Shown: in pieces, positions 51,381 through 60,895 of the stretch | How positions within the stretch are numbered: position 1 is the stretch's first letter | Layout: every line of letters begins with the position of its first letter | Sequence record: MN871451.1 | Reading direction: 5' to 3' (one strand) | DNA length: 64,000 nt | Notes under the pieces: generated by a model | The model's input: only the letters and a program-made list of their open reading frames with translations | Told to the model about the DNA's origin: nothing | The model's database searches: none | Program-made: the position numbers and the translations under genes

Positions 51381-52298
51381 ATGAGTGCCAGCACAAATAC
51401 GAATCTCATCGCCCGGACGGCGTTAAGCGGACTGCTCCAGACCCATCTGTTAGCGGGCCTGCCGTTGACTGCATTAAAGTACACCACGCTAAACGAAAGA
51501 CTCGCGGTAAATAGCGATGCCCAAATTGCTACCACTGATCGTCCTACGTTTGCTTACTACTGTATCGGTGATAAAGGACATTATAACGTCCCGACCGCCG
51601 ATAACGAAATCATTATCGAACCTGCGCAACACACCGCCGCCGACTTTGGGCCGTTCAACATGATCCCGTTTGTCATGCGTCTGGAAACCAATGATCTCTC
51701 TGTTGCTGAACGGGCGAACTACGGTCTCCGTAAATTAGAGAATCTGAACGGCGTGAACTATTTTTCTTACTATTTGAAAAAGGTTGATCTCTCTGCTGCG
51801 AAACCGACCTTGCGCCATACCGTTGTAGTGGACGGGGAAGCAACCACTACCGAATTTGTCCCGAACTCATCGAACCTGTTCCCGACCCGCCCAACGCTGA
51901 CCTCTGCCCAGGCGACCACAACGAACTCTGAGTACCTGACTGCCAGTATGGAAGTTGACGTACCTTTCGACGAGAACGATGTTGCGGAACTGAATAATGT
52001 CGCCAGCATTCTCTACGGTTCACAGAAGCGTGCGATTATCTCGGAGATCGGTTTGGTTTCCGCTATCCAGCGTACTGTACAAGCGGTGGGTCCGGGCGGC
52101 GCGCAAATCAACATGAATGAAGCGATCTACGCCCAGGTATTGACCTGGCTGTCGACGTATCGCCAGCTGTCCTTCGATAACCAAGGCTTTGTTATCACGC
52201 TGGAAATGGGCGCTAACGAACCGATGCTGACCTCGAATAGCGTAGCGACCCTGTCTACAACATCCAGCATTACGGCCACCATCCGTTCACTGGCTTAA
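51381..52298 (+). CDS. Baseplate/tail-fibre attachment protein (tail-collar/gpH N-terminal-like; phiKZ gp139-like position)
   Basis: 305 aa. YYCIGDKG and IISEIGLVS resemble the aiGdG...iREiGLf motifs of fibre-attachment domains. Confidence 0.55.
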   Translation: MSASTNTNLIARTALSGLLQTHLLAGLPLTALKYTTLNERLAVNSDAQIATTDRPTFAYYCIGDKGHYNVPTADNEIIIEPAQHTAADFGPFNMIPFVMRLETNDLSVAERANYGLRKLENLNGVNYFSYYLKKVDLSAAKPTLRHTVVVDGEATTTEFVPNSSNLFPTRPTLTSAQATTTNSEYLTASMEVDVPFDENDVAELNNVASILYGSQKRAIISEIGLVSAIQRTVQAVGPGGAQINMNEAIYAQVLTWLSTYRQLSFDNQGFVITLEMGANEPMLTSNSVATLSTTSSITATIRSLA

Positions 52299-52311
52299 CA
52301 GGAGGTGACCA

Positions 52312-53457
52312 ATGAGTACCGTTTTTGGTTACCCTACGATTGAAGCAGAAATTGTTGGTCTCATCAACAAAGCTAACGCGGATCACGGCGCAGCGTTCAC
52401 AGTTGATACGTTATCAATTGAAAGGGGCGAATACGATAGTTTCGAGGCACGTCAGAAGTTCATCGTTAAAGACACCTCGGGCAAGTATTACGGTGTCCGT
52501 GATGATATCTCGTTGTTTAAACGTAACTTCCAAACGTTGTTCAAAGGGATTGAATTACACGTTCAGGCAGGCTCAGGATTAAATAACCGGAAAATCCTCG
52601 CGTCGCTCTGTGAAACGTATGGTCTACCACCATTTGAGGACAGCGATTTCGCCGCCGGCTTGTTGGATCTGAACACGGATGCCGGAGATGAAGAAATCTT
52701 TATCTCGTGGCCGATTGCAGAAACCAGCTGGAGTTGGACAGGCTCTGTCGAGTTTTACCTCCGTAATACGAAAACTTCTCTCAGCAGCATTATTACCGAT
52801 AATCTGGATGCCTTCAAAGGCAATAGTTTCTCGGGCATTACGTGGTCAATTCGTCAGACGGCGATGGAAGGGTTATACTACCCGTCGATCTTTGATCTTG
52901 ACAAGGTGATCGTTGAAACCGATCTGAACGGTCTGGAGTACCCAGGAAGTCAGGACCTCAATACATTAATCACGGTTACAGAACTTAATGGCCTTGAGTA
53001 CCCAAGTGACATCGCCCTGAATAATTTCACTTCCGAACTCAATGGCTTGGAATACCCGCCGGTGATTGACCTGAGCAGCCTGCGCACGGGTGCGTTGGTA
53101 GGATTTGATTATCCGACTGGTGTCGGTACCAATCGTTACTCGGCCTTGGTCTTGACTCGCCCTCTGGATTTCTCGGATTATCAGAATGCGATTCAGCAGT
53201 TCCGTGTAGGTAGTGAAATCACGGACGCTAGTCTGGTTAAAGCAATTGTGAACATGATTGCCGCAAACTGGGCTACAATGAATACCGAAGCGAACAAAGC
53301 GAAATTGACCACCGCGTTCACTAACGCCAGAGTCACCTCGATCACGCGTAAACGGTCTATTCATGGATGGACAGAGACAGTCAACGTGACGCCGTCTACG
53401 GTGTCGTTTGTTGTCGGTCAGGCTTCACTGCGTTACGATATCGAAACCGAAGAATAA
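52312..53457 (+). CDS. Tail-associated protein, gp131-family-like, with LNGLEYP repeats
   Basis: 381 aa, SD AGGAGG. IVGLINKAN...FKRNFQTLF N-domain, and five ~18-20 aa repeats ending in GLxYP/GFDYP. Confidence 0.65.
   Translation: MSTVFGYPTIEAEIVGLINKANADHGAAFTVDTLSIERGEYDSFEARQKFIVKDTSGKYYGVRDDISLFKRNFQTLFKGIELHVQAGSGLNNRKILASLCETYGLPPFEDSDFAAGLLDLNTDAGDEEIFISWPIAETSWSWTGSVEFYLRNTKTSLSSIITDNLDAFKGNSFSGITWSIRQTAMEGLYYPSIFDLDKVIVETDLNGLEYPGSQDLNTLITVTELNGLEYPSDIALNNFTSELNGLEYPPVIDLSSLRTGALVGFDYPTGVGTNRYSALVLTRPLDFSDYQNAIQQFRVGSEITDASLVKAIVNMIAANWATMNTEANKAKLTTAFTNARVTSITRKRSIHGWTETVNVTPSTVSFVVGQASLRYDIETEE
52864..53115 (+). repeat. Coding repeat, five copies of L-N-G-L-E-Y-P
   Basis: MEGLYYP, LNGLEYP x3, LVGFDYP. 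The DNA core CTGAACGGTCTGGAGTACCC / CTTAATGGCCTTGAGTACCC / CTCAATGGCTTGGAATACCC differs at synonymous sites. Confidence 0.85.
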
Positions 53458-53464
53458 CAGACAA

Positions 53465-53498
53465 AAGAAAGGGGGCTTCGGTCCCCTTTCTTATTTTA
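53465..53498 (+). terminator. Intrinsic terminator with a UUCG loop
   Basis: AAGAAAGGGGGC-ttcg-GTCCCCTTTCTT followed by ATTTT. Confidence 0.85.
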
Positions 53499-53539
53499 TA
53501 GACCATGTATTTATTTTGAAATAGTGTTAAGGAACGACA

Positions 53540-54121
53540 ATGAATGACCAATTTTTTAGAATCATGGGTATTGACCCAGGGAGTCGTTGTTTTGGGATTT
53601 CGATTTTAGATTACGATCTCGATACCGGGAAAGTTTACCTCCGCCACGCTGAGACTTTCCACGCTGATCGCTTCTTAACTGACGTTAGTCCGGAATTGGT
53701 CTTAGGGGACCGAGGTGCGCGACATGCAAAGTGCAGAGAGTTCCTTATCGAACGTTTGCATTATTTTAACCCTGTCTTAGTCTCTTGCGAATCGGCGTTC
53801 ATGAAATTGAAATTTGTCTCCGCTTTCCAGTCTCTGGTAGAAGGGATTGTGATGGCCCGTGAGGCAGTCTGGGATTTTAAAAACACATTACCATTATTTT
53901 TAGTTGATCCACCCACGGCAAAAAAGGCGGTTGGTGCGCCAGGTAAAGGTGGGGACAAAGAAGCCGTTCGTAAAGCGGTGAAAAAATTGATTACAGAAAA
54001 GACGTTGTATGTTGATAGCGAATTAGATATCGATGAACTCGATGAACACAGCATCGATTCAATCGCCATCGGGTATTGGTTGTTCCTTAAATGGAAACGG
54101 GAATTAACGGGTATAATTTAA
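53540..54121 (+). CDS. ruvC: RuvC-like Holliday junction resolvase
   Basis: IMGIDPGS, VSCESAF, PPTAKKAVG...GDKEAV and DEHSIDSIAIG supply all RuvC catalytic motifs. Confidence 0.92.
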   Translation: MNDQFFRIMGIDPGSRCFGISILDYDLDTGKVYLRHAETFHADRFLTDVSPELVLGDRGARHAKCREFLIERLHYFNPVLVSCESAFMKLKFVSAFQSLVEGIVMAREAVWDFKNTLPLFLVDPPTAKKAVGAPGKGGDKEAVRKAVKKLITEKTLYVDSELDIDELDEHSIDSIAIGYWLFLKWKRELTGII

Positions 54122-54131
54122 GAAGGTAAAC

Positions 54132-54752
54132 ATGGCAAGAGCAAAACTATTAATCATTGAAGGACTCGATGGCGCAGGGAAAACAGAAGCGGTCTCATTA
54201 CTCCGACAGGCGTTGAAAGAACGTGGTGAATCTGTCGTGGTGTTTCGTGAGCCTGGCGGCAATGTCCCTGCAGAAAAAATCCGCGAATTAACACAGTCGT
54301 CAGATCGCCCGTCTTCCCCCGCTGCTCGTGCTCTGTTGTTCGTCTCGGCACGTAAAGAGATCTTCGACAGTCAAGTTAACTTTGCTCTGGAGGGTGGACA
54401 TACCGTTATTCTTGACCGCTCATGGCCTTCGACTTTCGCCTATAGCCCGAAAGAAGAATGGGATTGGATTTTCAATCTCCACGAAGGATTAGGACTCTTC
54501 GATCACCACCACTCAATCTTTTTCTTGGATATCGATTACGCCACCCACGTTGCTCGGTTAGGGCGCCGCAAAAAAGATGTCATCGAAGAAGAATTGGCGA
54601 CCCAATTTGATTTCTACCGTGACCGTTACTTAACGGTTTTGAATGACCTTGCGCCAGAGGCTAACGGAAAGGTCGCTCTCATTGATGCCACCCGTCCGTT
54701 GTCCGAGGTCTTTCTTCAACTGATGGCAAGTTATGATGAGGTCTATCAATGA
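54132..54752 (+). CDS. tmk: Thymidylate kinase
   Basis: IIEGLDGAGKT (P-loop), FREPGG, VILDRSWPSTFAY. Confidence 0.92.
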   Translation: MARAKLLIIEGLDGAGKTEAVSLLRQALKERGESVVVFREPGGNVPAEKIRELTQSSDRPSSPAARALLFVSARKEIFDSQVNFALEGGHTVILDRSWPSTFAYSPKEEWDWIFNLHEGLGLFDHHHSIFFLDIDYATHVARLGRRKKDVIEEELATQFDFYRDRYLTVLNDLAPEANGKVALIDATRPLSEVFLQLMASYDEVYQ

Positions 54753-55345
54753 CATTAAATGAACTCTTGTCACTCCCTGACGATACCGTCCTGGGTAATT
54801 ACGTTGATAAGGATGGTATCTCGCTTGCGGATCGCGCGCATCTTTTTGCGCCCGCTATTCACCCAGAAACCGCCACCGTGAAAGACCTGCGGGAATACCT
54901 GGACAGTCATCCCGATGACGATAACAAGACAATATGGTTAGAAATGGAAATCGCACCTTTACCGGAACAAGGAAAAGAAGAGCCTGTTAATGACCAAACA
55001 GATAAGACGGTACCCGGTATTCATCCAGAAGTGATTGGTGCGATCGCTAAACCGGATAAATACGAAGTCAGGTCACGGCGTTTGGTTGGTGCTATGTTCG
55101 CAATGGTACTGGCCTTCACTATTTTGATCTTCACCTCAGTAGTGGCCGTGGTGTGTATCGATAGAAAAGAACTCCCCTCGGCGACGTTAGCAGGGATCAT
55201 TATCTTACCGACGATGATGGTGACGTGGTATTACATGGGCATCATTAACCGAGAGCGCCGAGATATCCTTTCGGCAGTGGTAGGCGATAAGATCAACAGC
55301 AGTGTAGTAGCAGACGTTATCACCGCGTTACGTAGCAGACGATAA
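54749..55345 (+). CDS. Membrane protein with two C-terminal TM helices (holin candidate)
   Basis: Soluble acidic N-domain, then LVGAMFAMVLAFTILIFTSVVAVVCI and LAGIIILPTMMVTWYYMGII, then a basic tail. ATGA overlap with tmk. Confidence 0.55.
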   Translation: MTLNELLSLPDDTVLGNYVDKDGISLADRAHLFAPAIHPETATVKDLREYLDSHPDDDNKTIWLEMEIAPLPEQGKEEPVNDQTDKTVPGIHPEVIGAIAKPDKYEVRSRRLVGAMFAMVLAFTILIFTSVVAVVCIDRKELPSATLAGIIILPTMMVTWYYMGIINRERRDILSAVVGDKINSSVVADVITALRSRR

Positions 55346-55351
55346 AATATA

Positions 55352-55389
55352 AAAGGTAGAGGGTCAAACCCTCTACCTTTATTTTATTT
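55352..55389. terminator. Bidirectional terminator
   Basis: AAAGGTAGAGGGT-caa-ACCCTCTACCTTT with A-rich and T-rich flanks, between convergent genes. Confidence 0.85.
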
Positions 55390-55983
55390 TGTCTTACCAT
55401 CAAGTTGGCCGGCGTTAAGGTAAACTTCCACGAGTTCCTGGTATTTTACAAACGCCCCTTTATACTGAACGATGACCTGCTGCGCAGCGTTTAATCGCAC
55501 GGCGCATTGATCTGCTCTAAAGGCTTCCCCTTTAAGAAATTGCACATTCTCAGCTGGAAGTTTGGCGTAATAGGTTCCATCACTTCCTCCCGAACTTCCG
55601 GGAGTTTGACTTCCGGTACCTTGAGCGTTACCGATGTGTTTTTGGTCGGTACGTACTCTTTCGACGCGCAACCACACATCACCAATACCATCAAGCTTAG
55701 ACTGAGTATTTTTAATCGCTTTTTGTTGTTCATCGAATTTACCATTGATTGAAGACAAGTTATTATCCAATTCGTTTTGTAACACGCCCATGTGCTCATC
55801 AAGCGACTGTTGCAAATTCTTTTGGATGGTTTGCGTCATTTGGTTCGTGACGTCGGCGATTGTTTCAGTGATCTTTTTCTGTGCGTATTCCCCGGCTTTA
55901 AATACACCGTAGATAAAGAGCAAAATAGAGAGAATGACCAGAAGCCACCTAACTAACTTGTTGTTGAAAAATGAAGTCCACAT
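55384..55983 (-). CDS. i-spanin (Rz-like inner-membrane spanin subunit)
   Basis: N-terminal TM LVRWLLVILSILLFIYGVF, periplasmic coiled coil, Gly/Ser linker, and Rz-type C-terminal helix GEAFRADQCAVRLNAAQQ. SD AAGGTGG. Confidence 0.8.
   Translation of the reverse strand: MWTSFFNNKLVRWLLVILSILLFIYGVFKAGEYAQKKITETIADVTNQMTQTIQKNLQQSLDEHMGVLQNELDNNLSSINGKFDEQQKAIKNTQSKLDGIGDVWLRVERVRTDQKHIGNAQGTGSQTPGSSGGSDGTYYAKLPAENVQFLKGEAFRADQCAVRLNAAQQVIVQYKGAFVKYQELVEVYLNAGQLDGKTK
55491..55733 (-). CDS. o-spanin (Rz1-like outer-membrane lipoprotein) embedded in the +1 frame of the i-spanin
   Basis: From ATG 55733: MNNKKRLKILSLSLMVLVMCG-C(22)ASKEYVPT..., a basic n-region, hydrophobic h-region, lipobox-like MCG-C, Ala at +2, and a Pro-rich mature part with two further Cys. 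80 aa. Confidence 0.8.
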   Translation of the reverse strand: MNNKKRLKILSLSLMVLVMCGCASKEYVPTKNTSVTLKVPEVKLPEVREEVMEPITPNFQLRMCNFLKGKPLEQINAPCD

Positions 55984-55985
55984 AC

Positions 55986-57230
55986 TCAGGCCACCTTTTT
56001 AATCAAGAGAAACCGCGCTTCAGAAGAGAACGTCGGTCTATACCCGTAACGTTGGTTCTGAACCAATTGACGTTCATTCATCGGAATAGTTTCGTAAAAC
56101 CAACGACTGACCAACGAATGCGGGAGACGAAGTGCATAGAACCCATCTTGTTTCCACAAGGTATACTCCGCCAGATACCCGTTACCGATCTGTGCCGGAA
56201 GGTCAGGTAAAGTCTCGCCCGGTGAGAGATAAGTCCCGTCAATCAATGTCCGTTTCAAACTGAGGTATTCTTTCTCGAGGTTCACGCTGTCGATCACCAC
56301 CAGGAAAGAATAAACCGAAGTCATAAACGCTTTGATCACTGCGTCAGCGATGAACTGATTTGCAACCACCTGTTCTGTTTCATTCTCATCTTTAGAAAGC
56401 GGAATGTCACTGTAGTCCAAATATTGGTGCGTTTCAAAAAAGTGGTTGATCAGGTTGATATTCTGCATATGGACTTGGATACGGGTTTCCCCAGTAACAG
56501 AGACTTCTTTATCGAGAAGATACAGTTTCCCCGCTACTACCAGACCAACGGTTTTCCCGGTCAGCGCCACCGGAGAACGTAAGTAAAACCCTTTAGCTAA
56601 TGGTAACGCTTCCCCACCGCCCTGAATCATACTCGCCGAAATAGGGTAAGTCTCTACTTTCCCAATTGAACTAAAATCCAGAATCCCTACACGTAAGTCG
56701 TTAAACTTGGACGCAAACTTACCAGCGTGGTTCAGTGTAATCCCTTCGCCATCAATCGGCCATGCTCGGAAACAGAGTCCGTTGACTGTCCAAAGAGATT
56801 GGTCAACAATGGTACTGTAATCGGTAATCCCGTCCCGTTGCACCAGAAGGTCAATACGTTGATCTGGTAACAGGTTTTCGTCGGTACTGAAATTAGCGTT
56901 AGTCCCTTTAAAGGTGAACTTGTACGCCATTGCATTCAGAAAGCGAACGTAACTGTCACCGCGTTGACCACGAGGGTCGTCTTCCACCAAAGTCAGACCA
57001 GATGCTAATTCAAGGTATTGATTTAACGTGGCGACAGAATCGCGCACCGACACCGGGAGACTATAGAGATCCAGCCACCCGTTCTTCTCGTTAGTCGCGT
57101 CGAAGAGGTAAACCAGAACATTGCTGTACAAAGTGAAGATGGTAATCAGTCGTACTTCACCCAGTGCCTTTTCTTCCCAATCATTAAAACTGCCTTTCGT
57201 TCGTGTTTGTGCCTGAATAAGCTGATACAT
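55986..57230 (-). CDS. Virion structural protein, probably tail-associated
   Basis: Start placed at ATG 57230 (MYQLIQ) after AAAGGA. Beta-rich, with LWTVNGLCF and GLVVAGKLY repeats-like strands. Divergent from the tail-fibre genes. Confidence 0.6.
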   Translation of the reverse strand: MYQLIQAQTRTKGSFNDWEEKALGEVRLITIFTLYSNVLVYLFDATNEKNGWLDLYSLPVSVRDSVATLNQYLELASGLTLVEDDPRGQRGDSYVRFLNAMAYKFTFKGTNANFSTDENLLPDQRIDLLVQRDGITDYSTIVDQSLWTVNGLCFRAWPIDGEGITLNHAGKFASKFNDLRVGILDFSSIGKVETYPISASMIQGGGEALPLAKGFYLRSPVALTGKTVGLVVAGKLYLLDKEVSVTGETRIQVHMQNINLINHFFETHQYLDYSDIPLSKDENETEQVVANQFIADAVIKAFMTSVYSFLVVIDSVNLEKEYLSLKRTLIDGTYLSPGETLPDLPAQIGNGYLAEYTLWKQDGFYALRLPHSLVSRWFYETIPMNERQLVQNQRYGYRPTFSSEARFLLIKKVA

Positions 57231-57295
57231 GTCCGGTCCTTTTTGATGAGTATTGGTATGTTGATCCATCGGCCGATGGTACATTGAGGATAATC

Positions 57296-59527
57296 ATGAG
57301 CGACGAAATTGTATTCCCATATGACTTCGATCCTTACCAAGAGAATGAAAGTAACCAGATCTCAGGTGAGGCTCATACGATAACAGCAGCTAACGGAACC
57401 GACTTTAACTTTATTGTCCCGCGTTACGCGCCGTTTTTCCGTCGCGGCTTTGTCTGCCGCAATACGACCACCGGCGTCACCTTACGTCCTGACGTCGATT
57501 ATTTCTTTGGTTTCCGTTTCGACCAAATTACGGTTTCTGGAAGTCAGTTACCGGTCTACGGTGCGATTGTCTTTAACGATAAATCACTCAGCGCCAATAT
57601 CGAAATTGAATACCACACCCTAGGGGGAGAATTCTGTTTAGACGAGAATAAAATTCTCCAGCTCATGGCGAACAAAGCGCAAGACCCGCGTTCCTTGCAA
57701 TGGGGTGCCGTGGTTGATCTCCCAACGGAATTCCCGACTATCGCCCACCGTCATGACGTTGATGACATGACGGGCTTCAGCGAAGTGATTTCTGCGATCT
57801 ATTCGCTTTCTGATGCACAATCTGCCGGCTTTAATAAAGCCATGCAATCTTTGCTAGAACACATTGCCGACCACAACAACCCACACAAAATCACATTGGC
57901 CGATTTGGGTATTGACGATCTGGGTAATCTGGTTCCGGCGAATAAAGAGCAGGCAGAAGGCGGTACAGATAATACGTACTACATGACGTCTTTAAGAACG
58001 TCTCAGCAATTCCAGGCAATTTACTTGCCGTTACTGGAAGCGCACGAGAACGACGACAGTAACCCGCACAAGGTGAATAAAGCCCAAGTTGGGTTAGATC
58101 TGGTACAAAACTACCGTGTTGCGAACACCCTCGAATCTTCGGCAGGGGTAGCGGATAACCTGTACCTGACCCCGTCGGGCGGCAGGATTCTGGCAAACGC
58201 GCTGGTTCCGGGTATCATGGAGTTCCACACCACGAACACTAATAACCCGCATGGCGTCACTAAAGCACAAGTGGGCTTGGGGAATGTCCCTAACTACACC
58301 ACAGCAACGGAAGAAGAAGCGTTAGCGGGTGTGAGTAAAACGACTTTACTGACCCCGTATCTGGCCAACCTGATGTTGACAAACTCAACTGACCAACCGC
58401 TGGCAGCGCACTTACTGGATAAAAATAATCCGCACAGTGTGACCGCGGCGCAAGTCGGGTTAGGTAACGTTCAGAACTACGGAACGGCAACGAACGACCA
58501 AACCGTTTTAGGGACTGCCGCCAACCTCTATACCACTCCAGCGGGAATTGCGTATTGGTGGACCAATGCTGCGAAAATTTATGTCGACCAAGCGATTGAA
58601 CAAGGGACTAACTTAACGGCAGCGGATGTAGGCTTAGGAAACGTGGTTAATGCCGGCTTTGCCTCAAGTGCAGAGAACGCCGCCGGTACCGTCACTCAGA
58701 AATACGTCGATCCCGCAGGTGTGGTGACGGCTATTAAGAACAACGTAATCGTTCGTGATTATTCCTGCCAGCCGAGTTATATCGCTAAACTCACGGCCGG
58801 GTTCCCGGCCGGCGGGCTACTCGATGCGGCGGTAACGCATTCAACGGGGATTAACAAAACGTGGGATGCTACCCTGCGTACGTTGACTTCTCCGTTACAG
58901 GCCGCGGATAAAGTATCGGCATTGTTGATTGCGGCGCCTTCTACTTACTCCCAGAAAGGGTATGTCGATGTGGCGACGGGTACTTCAGTACCTGGGTTTA
59001 TTTTCGGTTACTATCAAGACACTAGCGGTAATGATAATTACGCCGGTATCTTCTTTAAAAACGGTGCGGTCTATCTCGGTACGTATATCGCCGGTACTTG
59101 GACCAAAGGAAGTGACGTTGCAATCGCGGCGTTAACGGGTTCCTCTATTCAGGTTACCTGTACGAAATCCGGGACCAGTATGTCCGTGACCGTAGCCTCT
59201 ACGACCGTCACGGTTGACGTGAGTTCGGTGACCTTCAGTTCATCCGCTTTTGCGAACATGGGTGGGTTTATCGTCAATGGTAAAGATTCGCTGATCTTTA
59301 CGCCTACTACCTTCGGTGGTTTGGTTTATAGTATTGTCGATGTGATCTCTCGTCAAAGTTATAAATATTCCGGTTCCGCTTGGGCGATCGACGAAACCGC
59401 TGACATGACTACGTTGGACACCGATCTGCGCGTAGGACGTACTATTTGTAACTTAGGGTCCAAAGAAGTTTTCATGCCTTTACCCAACAATCAATTTGCG
59501 GTCCTGAATCCACCGACTTCCCTTTAA
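57296..59527 (+). CDS. Tail fibre protein
   Basis: Start placed at ATG 57296 after GAGGA. Four H-x5-NPH-x-(V/I)-...-(Q)VGLG-type repeats plus a partial copy, and a Ser/Thr/Gly-rich beta-sandwich C-terminus. Confidence 0.82.
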   Translation: MSDEIVFPYDFDPYQENESNQISGEAHTITAANGTDFNFIVPRYAPFFRRGFVCRNTTTGVTLRPDVDYFFGFRFDQITVSGSQLPVYGAIVFNDKSLSANIEIEYHTLGGEFCLDENKILQLMANKAQDPRSLQWGAVVDLPTEFPTIAHRHDVDDMTGFSEVISAIYSLSDAQSAGFNKAMQSLLEHIADHNNPHKITLADLGIDDLGNLVPANKEQAEGGTDNTYYMTSLRTSQQFQAIYLPLLEAHENDDSNPHKVNKAQVGLDLVQNYRVANTLESSAGVADNLYLTPSGGRILANALVPGIMEFHTTNTNNPHGVTKAQVGLGNVPNYTTATEEEALAGVSKTTLLTPYLANLMLTNSTDQPLAAHLLDKNNPHSVTAAQVGLGNVQNYGTATNDQTVLGTAANLYTTPAGIAYWWTNAAKIYVDQAIEQGTNLTAADVGLGNVVNAGFASSAENAAGTVTQKYVDPAGVVTAIKNNVIVRDYSCQPSYIAKLTAGFPAGGLLDAAVTHSTGINKTWDATLRTLTSPLQAADKVSALLIAAPSTYSQKGYVDVATGTSVPGFIFGYYQDTSGNDNYAGIFFKNGAVYLGTYIAGTWTKGSDVAIAALTGSSIQVTCTKSGTSMSVTVASTTVTVDVSSVTFSSSAFANMGGFIVNGKDSLIFTPTTFGGLVYSIVDVISRQSYKYSGSAWAIDETADMTTLDTDLRVGRTICNLGSKEVFMPLPNNQFAVLNPPTSL

Positions 59528-59539
59528 GCGAGGTTTAAA

Positions 59540-60895
59540 ATGACAGTAAGTACGGCAGCTTTGAAATACCCGCTTGATCGGACAGGCGCCGCAGCGAGTA
59601 ATAAAATTATCAACGAGGCACGTACGGTAGGGCGCGAAGTTTATCGCGCCATTGCGCCTTACGCTGGCGCATTCTTTACCAAGAGCATGGTTGTGGTCGA
59701 TCAGGCCACGGGCGCAGTGTTGACCCTGAATACCGATTATAAAATCCTTTATCCGTACCAAGAAGCGGAATTGGAAATCGGTAAACCTATTTGTACGATC
59801 GTACAAATTCTCAACGCTAACGTGACCGCAGTCTATCTGACTTACCAATGTGTAGGGGGTCCCTACACCACTGCCCGCGATGTCCTTGTTCAGTTGATCT
59901 CTGATCTACAGCAGGACAACCGTGCGGTGACGTGGGACGCCATTCTCGGTAAACCGATTGAGTTTAACCCGTCTAAACACCTTCACTCCGCGACTGACCT
60001 TTACGGTCTTGAGTACGTGGTGTTGGCCTTAGAAGAATTGGTTCAGGCGGCCTATACCGGTGACGTTTCTTCGCATGATGTTCTTTACAACTACATCGAC
60101 CGTATCAAAGCGTACCTCGACGATAATCTCGATGCCCTGCACCAGACCGATACAGATCTTTACGCAGAAATTGAGCGTTTAGATAATCGGATTGACGGGG
60201 TGATTAACAGCATCAATGGTGTTCAAACGAATTTGACCACGCATATCGACGATGTTAGCAATCCCCATAAAGTTACCAAGGCACAAGTGGGGCTGGGGGC
60301 AGTTGAGAACTATCGTCCCGCGACGCAGGATGAGGCGGAAGCTGGCACAGCACTGAACGTGATTATGACCCCTTTACGCGGGATCCAGCAGATCACTAAG
60401 TACATTGCGACCAACGTCACTCCAACCATAACGAGCCACGTACAAAACACCAGTAACCCGCATAACACCACTGCCGCCCAAGTCGGGTTAGGTAACGTGA
60501 CGAATAATGCGCAGGTAATTCGTGGTGGCGGCACGAACATGTTAACCAACACAATTCGTATTGGGTGGGACGGCACGCAAATTTTAGCGCAGGTTGACAA
60601 CACCTCAATGGGTCGCGTACACACCACGAATCAACCGGATCCGAATATTGCCTCGCACGCGAATAATAAGTCTAACCCTCACAGCGTTACTAAAGCGCAA
60701 GTGGGTTTAGGAAGTGTCCCGAACTGGCGAGAAGCTACCGATCAGGAAAACTATGATGGTAACGCCGGGAGCGTCTTCGCCACGCCGTACAGTATTCGAC
60801 GTTACACAGATGGTTACCGTACGTTCTCTTACAGCACCCCGCCTGGTAGTACATCGGGATATCGTGAAGGCCACATCTGGTATAAACTTTTCTAA
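59540..60895 (+). CDS. Tail fibre protein, paralogue of the upstream gene
   Basis: Shared N-domain (APYAGAFF vs PRYAPFF; YQCVGG vs YHTLGG; VTWDAILGKP vs LQWGAVVDLP), coiled coil, three NPHxVTxAQVGLG repeats. SD GAGG. Confidence 0.82.
   Translation: MTVSTAALKYPLDRTGAAASNKIINEARTVGREVYRAIAPYAGAFFTKSMVVVDQATGAVLTLNTDYKILYPYQEAELEIGKPICTIVQILNANVTAVYLTYQCVGGPYTTARDVLVQLISDLQQDNRAVTWDAILGKPIEFNPSKHLHSATDLYGLEYVVLALEELVQAAYTGDVSSHDVLYNYIDRIKAYLDDNLDALHQTDTDLYAEIERLDNRIDGVINSINGVQTNLTTHIDDVSNPHKVTKAQVGLGAVENYRPATQDEAEAGTALNVIMTPLRGIQQITKYIATNVTPTITSHVQNTSNPHNTTAAQVGLGNVTNNAQVIRGGGTNMLTNTIRIGWDGTQILAQVDNTSMGRVHTTNQPDPNIASHANNKSNPHSVTKAQVGLGSVPNWREATDQENYDGNAGSVFATPYSIRRYTDGYRTFSYSTPPGSTSGYREGHIWYKLF

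Follow-up and report, generated by a model that had tools for sequence, protein, structure and literature searches.

A fully embedded spanin pair of predicted Rz/Rz1 type in a Siatvirus jumbo phage of the phiKZ family

The 64,000-nucleotide stretch of sequence record MN871451.1 analysed here (hereafter the window) carries on its minus strand two nested genes that, judging from their sequences, very probably encode a functional two-component spanin of the Rz/Rz1 type, with one gene fully embedded in the other. The outer gene (55384-55983), for a putative inner-membrane subunit or i-spanin of 199 aa, spans 600 nt from an ATG at 55983 to a stop codon ending at 55384, and is preceded by a Shine-Dalgarno sequence read as AAGGTGG (55991-55997, minus strand). 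The inner gene (55491-55733), for a putative outer-membrane lipoprotein or o-spanin made as an 80-aa precursor with a 59-aa mature form, runs in the +1 frame from an ATG at 55733 to a stop at 55491, its 243-nt overlap corresponding to nucleotides 251-493 of the 600-nt i-spanin gene and lying wholly inside it; the inner open frame reaches upstream to a TTG at 55802. The coordinates and lengths assigned to both open reading frames (ORFs) in an initial annotation, which had proposed an Rz/Rz1 spanin pair in a phiKZ-like jumbo phage, were exact.

The window belongs to a Siatvirus of the family Chimalliviridae, a Klebsiella/Serratia jumbo phage of the phiKZ family. The ~300-kb phages KpLz_1_41 and KpYy_2_45 match the region at 100% identity, KpLz-2_45 (genus Siatvirus), LPKP23 and MJ359 do so at 97-99%, and FBKp24/Centimanus (Maaswegvirus) at about 75%, with the Moabitevirus group more distant; Siatvirus and Moabitevirus are both placed in Chimalliviridae. 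Homologues of phiKZ gp130, gp131, gp139 and gp140 are present in the window, which also encodes a split RNA polymerase, a 761-aa major head protein and internal head proteins, and the phiKZ-like assignment thereby stands. Among sequencing runs, only metagenomic or virome runs contained the window sequence. Metagenomes from food, fertilizer, wastewater, surfaces and the gut hold near-identical copies of the phage, which, compared over positions 54700-57300, differ by 7-25 single-nucleotide polymorphisms (SNPs) over 2.6 kb with no insertions or deletions.

The outer protein has a sole hydrophobic segment, at residues 10-28 (55900-55956, minus strand; 19-residue Kyte-Doolittle maximum with a mean of 2.45, K9/R12 preceding), as expected from the single N-terminal transmembrane domain (TMD) initially ascribed to it. 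The position of this TMD is kept in all i-spanin homologues, and we infer a type II orientation in the inner membrane (N-in, C-out). An AlphaFold2 (AF2) model, of low confidence (predicted local distance difference test score, pLDDT, 58), has helices at residues 9-98, which include the TMD, and 144-192, separated by a disordered Gly/Ser linker at residues 108-137, and this modelled succession of TMD, helix, linker and helix fits a spanin. Of the coiled coil put forward in the initial annotation, only long helices are predicted, in this low-confidence model. The C-terminal helix (residues 144-192; 55408-55554, minus strand), modelled as such by AF2, contains the sequence E-A-F-R-A-D-Q-C-A-V-R-L, in which the A-x-R-A-D...L pattern noted earlier is recognisable, and aligns with the invariant columns F-L-K-G-E-A-x-R-A-D-Q-C. 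R156, A157 and D158 are invariant or near-invariant over 31 remote homologues, C160 is invariant within the family and, by analogy with lambda Rz/Rz1, this helix is the presumed contact region for the o-spanin C-terminus.

The inner protein begins with four K/R among its first eight residues followed by a hydrophobic core and a lipobox, V-M-C-G-C22, that conforms to the PROSITE PS51257-type rule and has Ala at +2 (signal peptide and lipobox, residues 1-22, 55668-55733; codon of the predicted lipidated Cys22, 55668-55670; both on the minus strand). Its 59-aa mature part has seven Pro and two further Cys (C64 and C79), and hence the lipoprotein signal, the Pro-rich body and the two extra Cys of the initial annotation are all present. 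The same rule holds in 10 of 10 aligned lineages, in which G21-C22 is invariant and the +2 residue is Ala or, in one of them (L013), Glu; it also holds in the distant lineages L018, L019 and L020, and the lipobox of the corresponding ORF in phage PCH45, read from the sequence, is S-L-V-G-C. Since G21 and C22 are invariant and C20 is replaced by Ser or another residue in other lineages, C22 would be the acylated Cys. Both mature Cys are found in eight of the 10 aligned o-spanin lineages and are lost jointly in two. In the distant o-spanin orthologues L018:2299-2568 and L020:6227-6499 both mature Cys are missing together, with the i-spanin Cys retained, which suggests that they act as a pair. 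The 13-mer TTTCTTAAAGGGG at 55527-55539 (minus strand) encodes F-L-K-G in both frames, as part of Q-F-L-K-G-E-A in the outer and N-F-L-K-G-K-P in the inner protein, each of which is among the most conserved stretches of its protein.

The openness of the +1 frame is by itself within chance expectation. Among 5000 synonymous-codon resamplings of the outer gene, with codons drawn from window usage, the +1 frame was open for 114 codons or more in 6.6%, and 27% contained an ATG ORF 80 or more codons long; open-frame length was dropped as evidence in favour of comparative tests, since a +1 ORF of this kind is ordinary. We gathered the locus from ten lineages, comprising three viral genera and metagenomic contigs found via the protein, and then from three distant lineages and PCH45, to give 14. 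In all 14, Siatvirus, Maaswegvirus, Moabitevirus, seven metagenomic lineages and PCH45 among them, no stop interrupts the inner frame, and its start, signal peptide and lipobox Cys are retained, down to 19-23% i-spanin identity. Across the ten-lineage set a Met stands at the aligned place, the lipobox is mostly M-S-G-C and the o-spanin tail is nearly invariant (V-M-E-P-I-T-P-N-F-Q-x-R-x-C-N-F-L-K-G-K-P-x-E-Q-I-N-A-P-C), and the three additional lineages (~23-37% outer identity) and PCH45 (~19%) have an embedded lipoprotein with a P-N-F-x-x-R-L motif. Neither an interrupted inner frame nor a missing lipobox, which had been named beforehand as findings that would speak against a spanin pair, was encountered in the relatives examined.

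Synonymous variation is strongly depressed where the genes overlap. Divergence at outer-frame third positions is 0.52-0.70 in the flanks for ten pairs of sequences and 0.22 for the closest pair, as against 0.07-0.33 and 0.03, respectively, inside the overlap (Fisher p from 6e-20 to 5e-5 over the 11 pairs). In the comparison with FBKp24, the closest informative pair, the overlap varies most at position 1 of the outer codons, equivalent to position 3 of the inner ones, and the inner protein is the better conserved of the two, both here (85% versus 67% for the outer protein) and in the Moabite group (67% versus 43%). Contigs from four unrelated metagenomes, used to assess population variants, have no insertions or deletions and seven SNPs in the i-spanin gene: the sole SNP within the overlap (55635) causes I117V in the outer frame and no change in the inner protein, and of the six outside the overlap five are third-position synonymous changes in the outer frame. 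Both reading frames are therefore under purifying selection. The conservation pattern and the homology described below exceed what chance would give, which the open frame alone does not, and we consider the comparative evidence, comprising the conserved frame, the depressed third positions and the better conservation of the inner protein, decisive for the inner gene being real. The two signs that the initial annotation had proposed to look for in orthologues, open frames and reduced synonymous variation, were thus both found.

Profile searches link both proteins to spanin families. For the outer protein the matches are phrog_37839 (5.9e-39, unnamed) and phrog_2466, 'Rz-like spanin' (9.8e-6); for the inner one the match is phrog_3198, also 'Rz-like spanin' (6e-4), to which eight of ten orthologues match as well (best 4e-8). 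When 1.84 billion representatives were searched with a profile built from eight outer proteins, 39 proteins were retrieved, for the most part of 170-210 aa and alignable end to end, with the motif L-S-x(5)-F-L-x-G-E-A-x-R-A-D in common. We aligned 31 full-length proteins, the window protein and 30 profile hits (alignment A2), having omitted P0007 (the Moabite i-spanin, a close relative), three hits that match over a short stretch (P0040, P0042 and P0053), and five long ones that match in several stretches (P0047, P0051, P0052, P0054 and P0055). Of the 31 proteins in this set, 19 match phrog_2466, 16 phrog_1327 and 11 the Pfam family of the bacteriophage Rz lysis protein, PF03245. When ten members were scanned separately, nine matched PF03245 at E up to 0.001 and four cleared its 25.4-bit cut-off (P0049, 60.4 bits; P0025, 59.8; P0038, 47.3; P0044, 36.2). 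On the inner side, a profile of o-spanin orthologues aligns with lambda Rz1 over 50 columns, partly signal peptide (hhalign 89%, E 2.4e-6), pairing V-M-E-P-I-T-P-N-F-Q-T with I-M-Q-P-P-P-D-W-Q-T, and the nearest clusters in a language-model atlas are RzoQ/Rz1 (feature scores 0.92-0.93), which we take as a lead only.

The homologue in Serratia phage PCH45 is more distant still. Coding sequence (CDS) 54 of this phage (gp54, QFP93176.1; L022:4772-5308) is homologous to the window i-spanin (hhalign 99.6%, E 7e-24, ~19% identity), lies in the same synteny and contains an embedded lipoprotein ORF (L022:5013-5279; hhalign 95.3%). GenBank lists CDS 54 as hypothetical and leaves the inner ORF unannotated. 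In a transposon-sequencing preprint (10.64898/2025.12.19.695335), PCH45 gp54, named 'Rz lysis/spanin', is reported to be essential; we assigned gp54 to QFP93176.1 by CDS order, checked against gp50 of the preprint being thymidylate kinase.

The criteria for two-component spanins were taken from Kongari et al. 2018 (PMC6139136), and with respect to these the pair has a single N-terminal TMD, an outer-membrane-lipoprotein signal without the Lol-avoidance Asp at +2, an embedded gene and Cys predicted to be periplasmic. With the conserved frame and lipobox, the depressed synonymous variation and the remote Rz/Rz1 homology, the spanin interpretation of the initial annotation is supported, each of its predictions that was testable at the sequence level having been borne out. 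Several points weigh against it nonetheless. Function is read from homology and architecture. The window outer protein gives no match to PF03245 (Phage_lysis) at E up to 0.1 and does not reach the gathering score, its link to that family being transitive, via the remote homologues, and direct hhalign comparison of the i-spanin profile with lambda Rz is weak (22%, or 0.3% with a narrow profile). The Rz1 match of the inner protein is made up in part by the signal peptide. The AF2 model of the i-spanin is of low confidence and served for secondary structure alone. The o-spanin start is ambiguous between 55733 and an alternative in-frame ATG 12 nt upstream at 55745, and only a weak Shine-Dalgarno sequence (GGU, about -3 kcal/mol) precedes the inner ATG. 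Finally, the locus lies among tail and virion genes, away from any endolysin. A weak GGU-type Shine-Dalgarno match (about -3 to -4 kcal/mol) ahead of the o-spanin gene is common to all lineages. Neither window protein had a significant hit in Pfam or NCBIfam, where the matches amounted to coiled-coil noise and weak similarity to lipoprotein signals, and the inner protein has no Pfam match to the PF06085 or PF28595 families. We accordingly read the pair as remote relatives of Rz/Rz1 that would work alike, not as Pfam-defined members.

If so, the N-terminal TMD of the 199-aa i-spanin would hold the protein in the inner membrane, its mostly helical periplasmic part consisting of two helical blocks joined by the flexible Gly/Ser linker, while the 80-aa prolipoprotein would be lipidated at Cys22, cut by signal peptidase II and, with Ala at +2, delivered by the Lol system to the outer membrane, into its inner leaflet. 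The C-terminal regions of both would then bind across the periplasm, by analogy with lambda Rz/Rz1 and phiKZ gp141/141.1, and the conserved periplasmic Cys (C160 in the i-spanin, C64 and C79 in the o-spanin) would probably form disulfide links. After peptidoglycan removal by the endolysin, these complexes may bring about fusion of the two membranes and so finish lysis. The membrane locations, the binding of the two proteins, the disulfides and the fusion are all modelled on lambda and phiKZ.

A membrane protein and a lipoprotein could also act outside lysis, for example in superinfection exclusion, receptor masking or tail/virion assembly, and virion and tail-fibre genes do flank the locus, with the i-spanin start abutting the gp130-like gene and no endolysin nearby. 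We nevertheless regard this as improbable, since the homology is specifically to Rz/Rz1 spanin families, embedding in the +1 frame is characteristic of spanin pairs (PMC6139136), the PCH45 homologue is essential, unlike typical exclusion lipoproteins, and spanins distant from the endolysin are common, as in Moabite. It is less probable again that the inner ORF is untranslated, its openness due to chance and the low variation in the overlap to constraint on the outer protein or on mRNA or DNA structure. The frequency with which resampling yielded a +1 ATG ORF of at least 80 codons, the weak inner Shine-Dalgarno sequence and the good conservation of the overlapped part of the outer protein itself are all compatible with this. 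However, constraint on the outer protein would not lower third positions, which drop as described and leave residual variation at the inner third position; the start, n-region, h-region, lipobox G-C and P-x-x-P-N-F-x-x-R are kept in 14 lineages, even at ~20% outer identity; and in profile comparisons the inner protein resembles Rz1 families. Least probable of all is that the pair is a decaying remnant, with a second spanin or a membrane-active endolysin disrupting the outer membrane: examination of the ~300-kb genome was confined to the window and membrane-active endolysin ideas were once proposed for phiKZ, but purifying selection acts on both frames over a deep clade, no frame breaks occur in relatives or metagenomic variants, and the essential PCH45 homologue argues against decay.

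Upstream of the spanin genes, on the same strand, lies the gene for a virion protein homologous to phiKZ gp130 (55986-57284), and the i-spanin start is 2 nt past its stop; the two genes are probably co-transcribed and, because of this abutment on a virion gene, the spanins are probably expressed late. As called mechanically, the gp130-like ORF is 432 aa long, compared with 414-415 aa in the annotations of relatives, and its PHROG match does not start until residue 19; the true start is probably the downstream Met. Beyond it, on the plus strand (57284-60895), adjacent genes of 747 and 451 aa both match the phiKZ tail protein gp131, with the match internally repeated, and are paralogous, tail-fibre-like genes beside the lysis locus. 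Downstream of the i-spanin gene, a bidirectional intrinsic terminator (55352-55380, both strands) with a 13-bp stem and U-tracts on each strand separates it from a convergent gene; an equivalent is annotated in Moabite. A non-exhaustive search of the window for an endolysin, drawing on the annotation of a relative and on Pfam scans of ORFs near the locus, found none.

The convergent gene (54749-55345, plus strand) encodes a conserved 198-aa protein with a variable ~110-aa soluble N-terminal domain, two TMDs (about residues 113-137 and 145-166), a basic C-terminal tail and an invariant motif, W160..M-G-I-I-N-x-E-R-R-D. A two-TMD protein accompanies the spanins in every relative with downstream flank, including PCH45 (hhalign 97.1%). 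It belongs to no named family, its PHROG match being to a family of unknown function only; in the language-model atlas it falls in unnamed viral clusters at chance-level scores, and it has no similarity to the phiKZ holin gp142. Because of its topology and position, and because no holin has been identified in the clade, we infer that it is a holin candidate, and it provides a concrete one for this clade. We further suggest, tentatively and as the more doubtful proposition, that in the Enterobacterales branch (Siatvirus, Maaswegvirus, Moabitevirus and PCH45-like phages) the phiKZ-type lysis genes by the gp140 gene may have been replaced by the embedded spanins and a two-TMD holin of class II topology with a long N-terminal cytoplasmic domain, analogous and unrelated to the class IIIb gp142.

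Orthologues of the pair are known from Serratia phage Moabite, whose record and 2019 genome announcement, from the Center for Phage Technology, give an i-spanin (CPT_Moabite_142) and an embedded o-spanin (CPT_Moabite_143; QDB71172/QDB71173); in the announcement the assignment is bioinformatic, no holin is identified and the endolysin is distant from the spanins. The Moabite and window pairs have in common the embedded +1 architecture, the synteny (gp130-like gene upstream, convergent two-TMD gene, Tmk, RuvC-like gene), a lipobox, P-I-T-P-N-F-Q and F-L-K-G-K-P, and R-A-D-Q-C in the i-spanin. They differ in sequence (42-43% identity for the i-spanin, 67% for the o-spanin), in genus (Moabitevirus versus Siatvirus), in host and in the lipobox, which is A-M-S-G-C in Moabite and V-M-C-G-C in the window. 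The embedded pair has therefore already been annotated and published for Moabite, and the window copy is an ordinary feature, correctly read. In the MJ359 and FBKp24 records the outer gene is labelled 'Rz-like spanin' or 'putative spanin', and among eight annotated relatives only Moabite lists the inner gene. The sole member of the inner-protein family in a collection of 5.8 billion proteins is the hand-annotated Moabite o-spanin, as expected from the initial remark that gene callers miss such embedded genes. A real gene under selection is thus absent from the Siatvirus, Maaswegvirus and PCH45 records and from many metagenomic jumbo-phage records, and the chief value of the finding lies in annotation; understanding of spanins is unchanged by it.

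With lambda Rz/Rz1 (PF03245, PF06085) the window pair shares the embedded +1 o-spanin gene, the modelled succession of TMD, helix, linker and helix, a predicted short Pro-rich outer-membrane lipoprotein and putatively periplasmic Cys. Its proteins are longer (199 and 80 aa versus 153 and 60 aa), its o-spanin has two mature Cys compared to one in lambda Rz1, and its genes lie outside a holin-endolysin cassette.

Overlapped two-component spanins have been listed for phiKZ, EL, 201phi2-1, OBP and Ea35-70 (Kongari et al., 2018), and experiments on phiKZ, the type phage of the family, have defined its lysis cassette as the spanins gp141/141.1, the class IIIb holin gp142, the regulator gp143 and the endolysin gp144, with gp141/141.1 complementing lambda Rz-am Rz1-am (Manohar et al., 2026; PMC12894885). 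The initial annotation took the lysis apparatus of phiKZ-like phages, the endolysin apart, to be poorly defined; given these two studies and the 2019 Moabite announcement, that view is out of date. The window locus is two genes downstream of a homologue of gp140 (RuvC-like; 32% identity, E 7e-30), where phiKZ has genes 141-144. In a comparison of 51381-55983 with phiKZ (L011:13010-17071), the window has a thymidylate kinase gene inserted and the spanins inverted. No homologue of gp142, gp143 or gp144 is detectable in the window, nor does the window pair have homology to gp141/gp141.1 by BLASTP (E 36), hhalign (2%) or tblastn of gp141 and an extended gp141.1 against the window (E up to 1). The phiKZ and window pairs are thus alike in phage family, in combining an i-spanin with a lipoprotein o-spanin and in their site just downstream of gp139/gp140 homologues, but the phiKZ pair is overlapped, has the lipobox L-N-G-C and lies in a co-directional cassette with gp142-gp144, whereas the window pair is embedded and on the opposite strand. 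Two branches of Chimalliviridae hence use unrelated spanins at a syntenic site and, rather than one spanin being common to the nucleus-forming jumbo phages, the enterobacterial branch has the embedded Rz/Rz1 type and phiKZ an unrelated overlapped pair.

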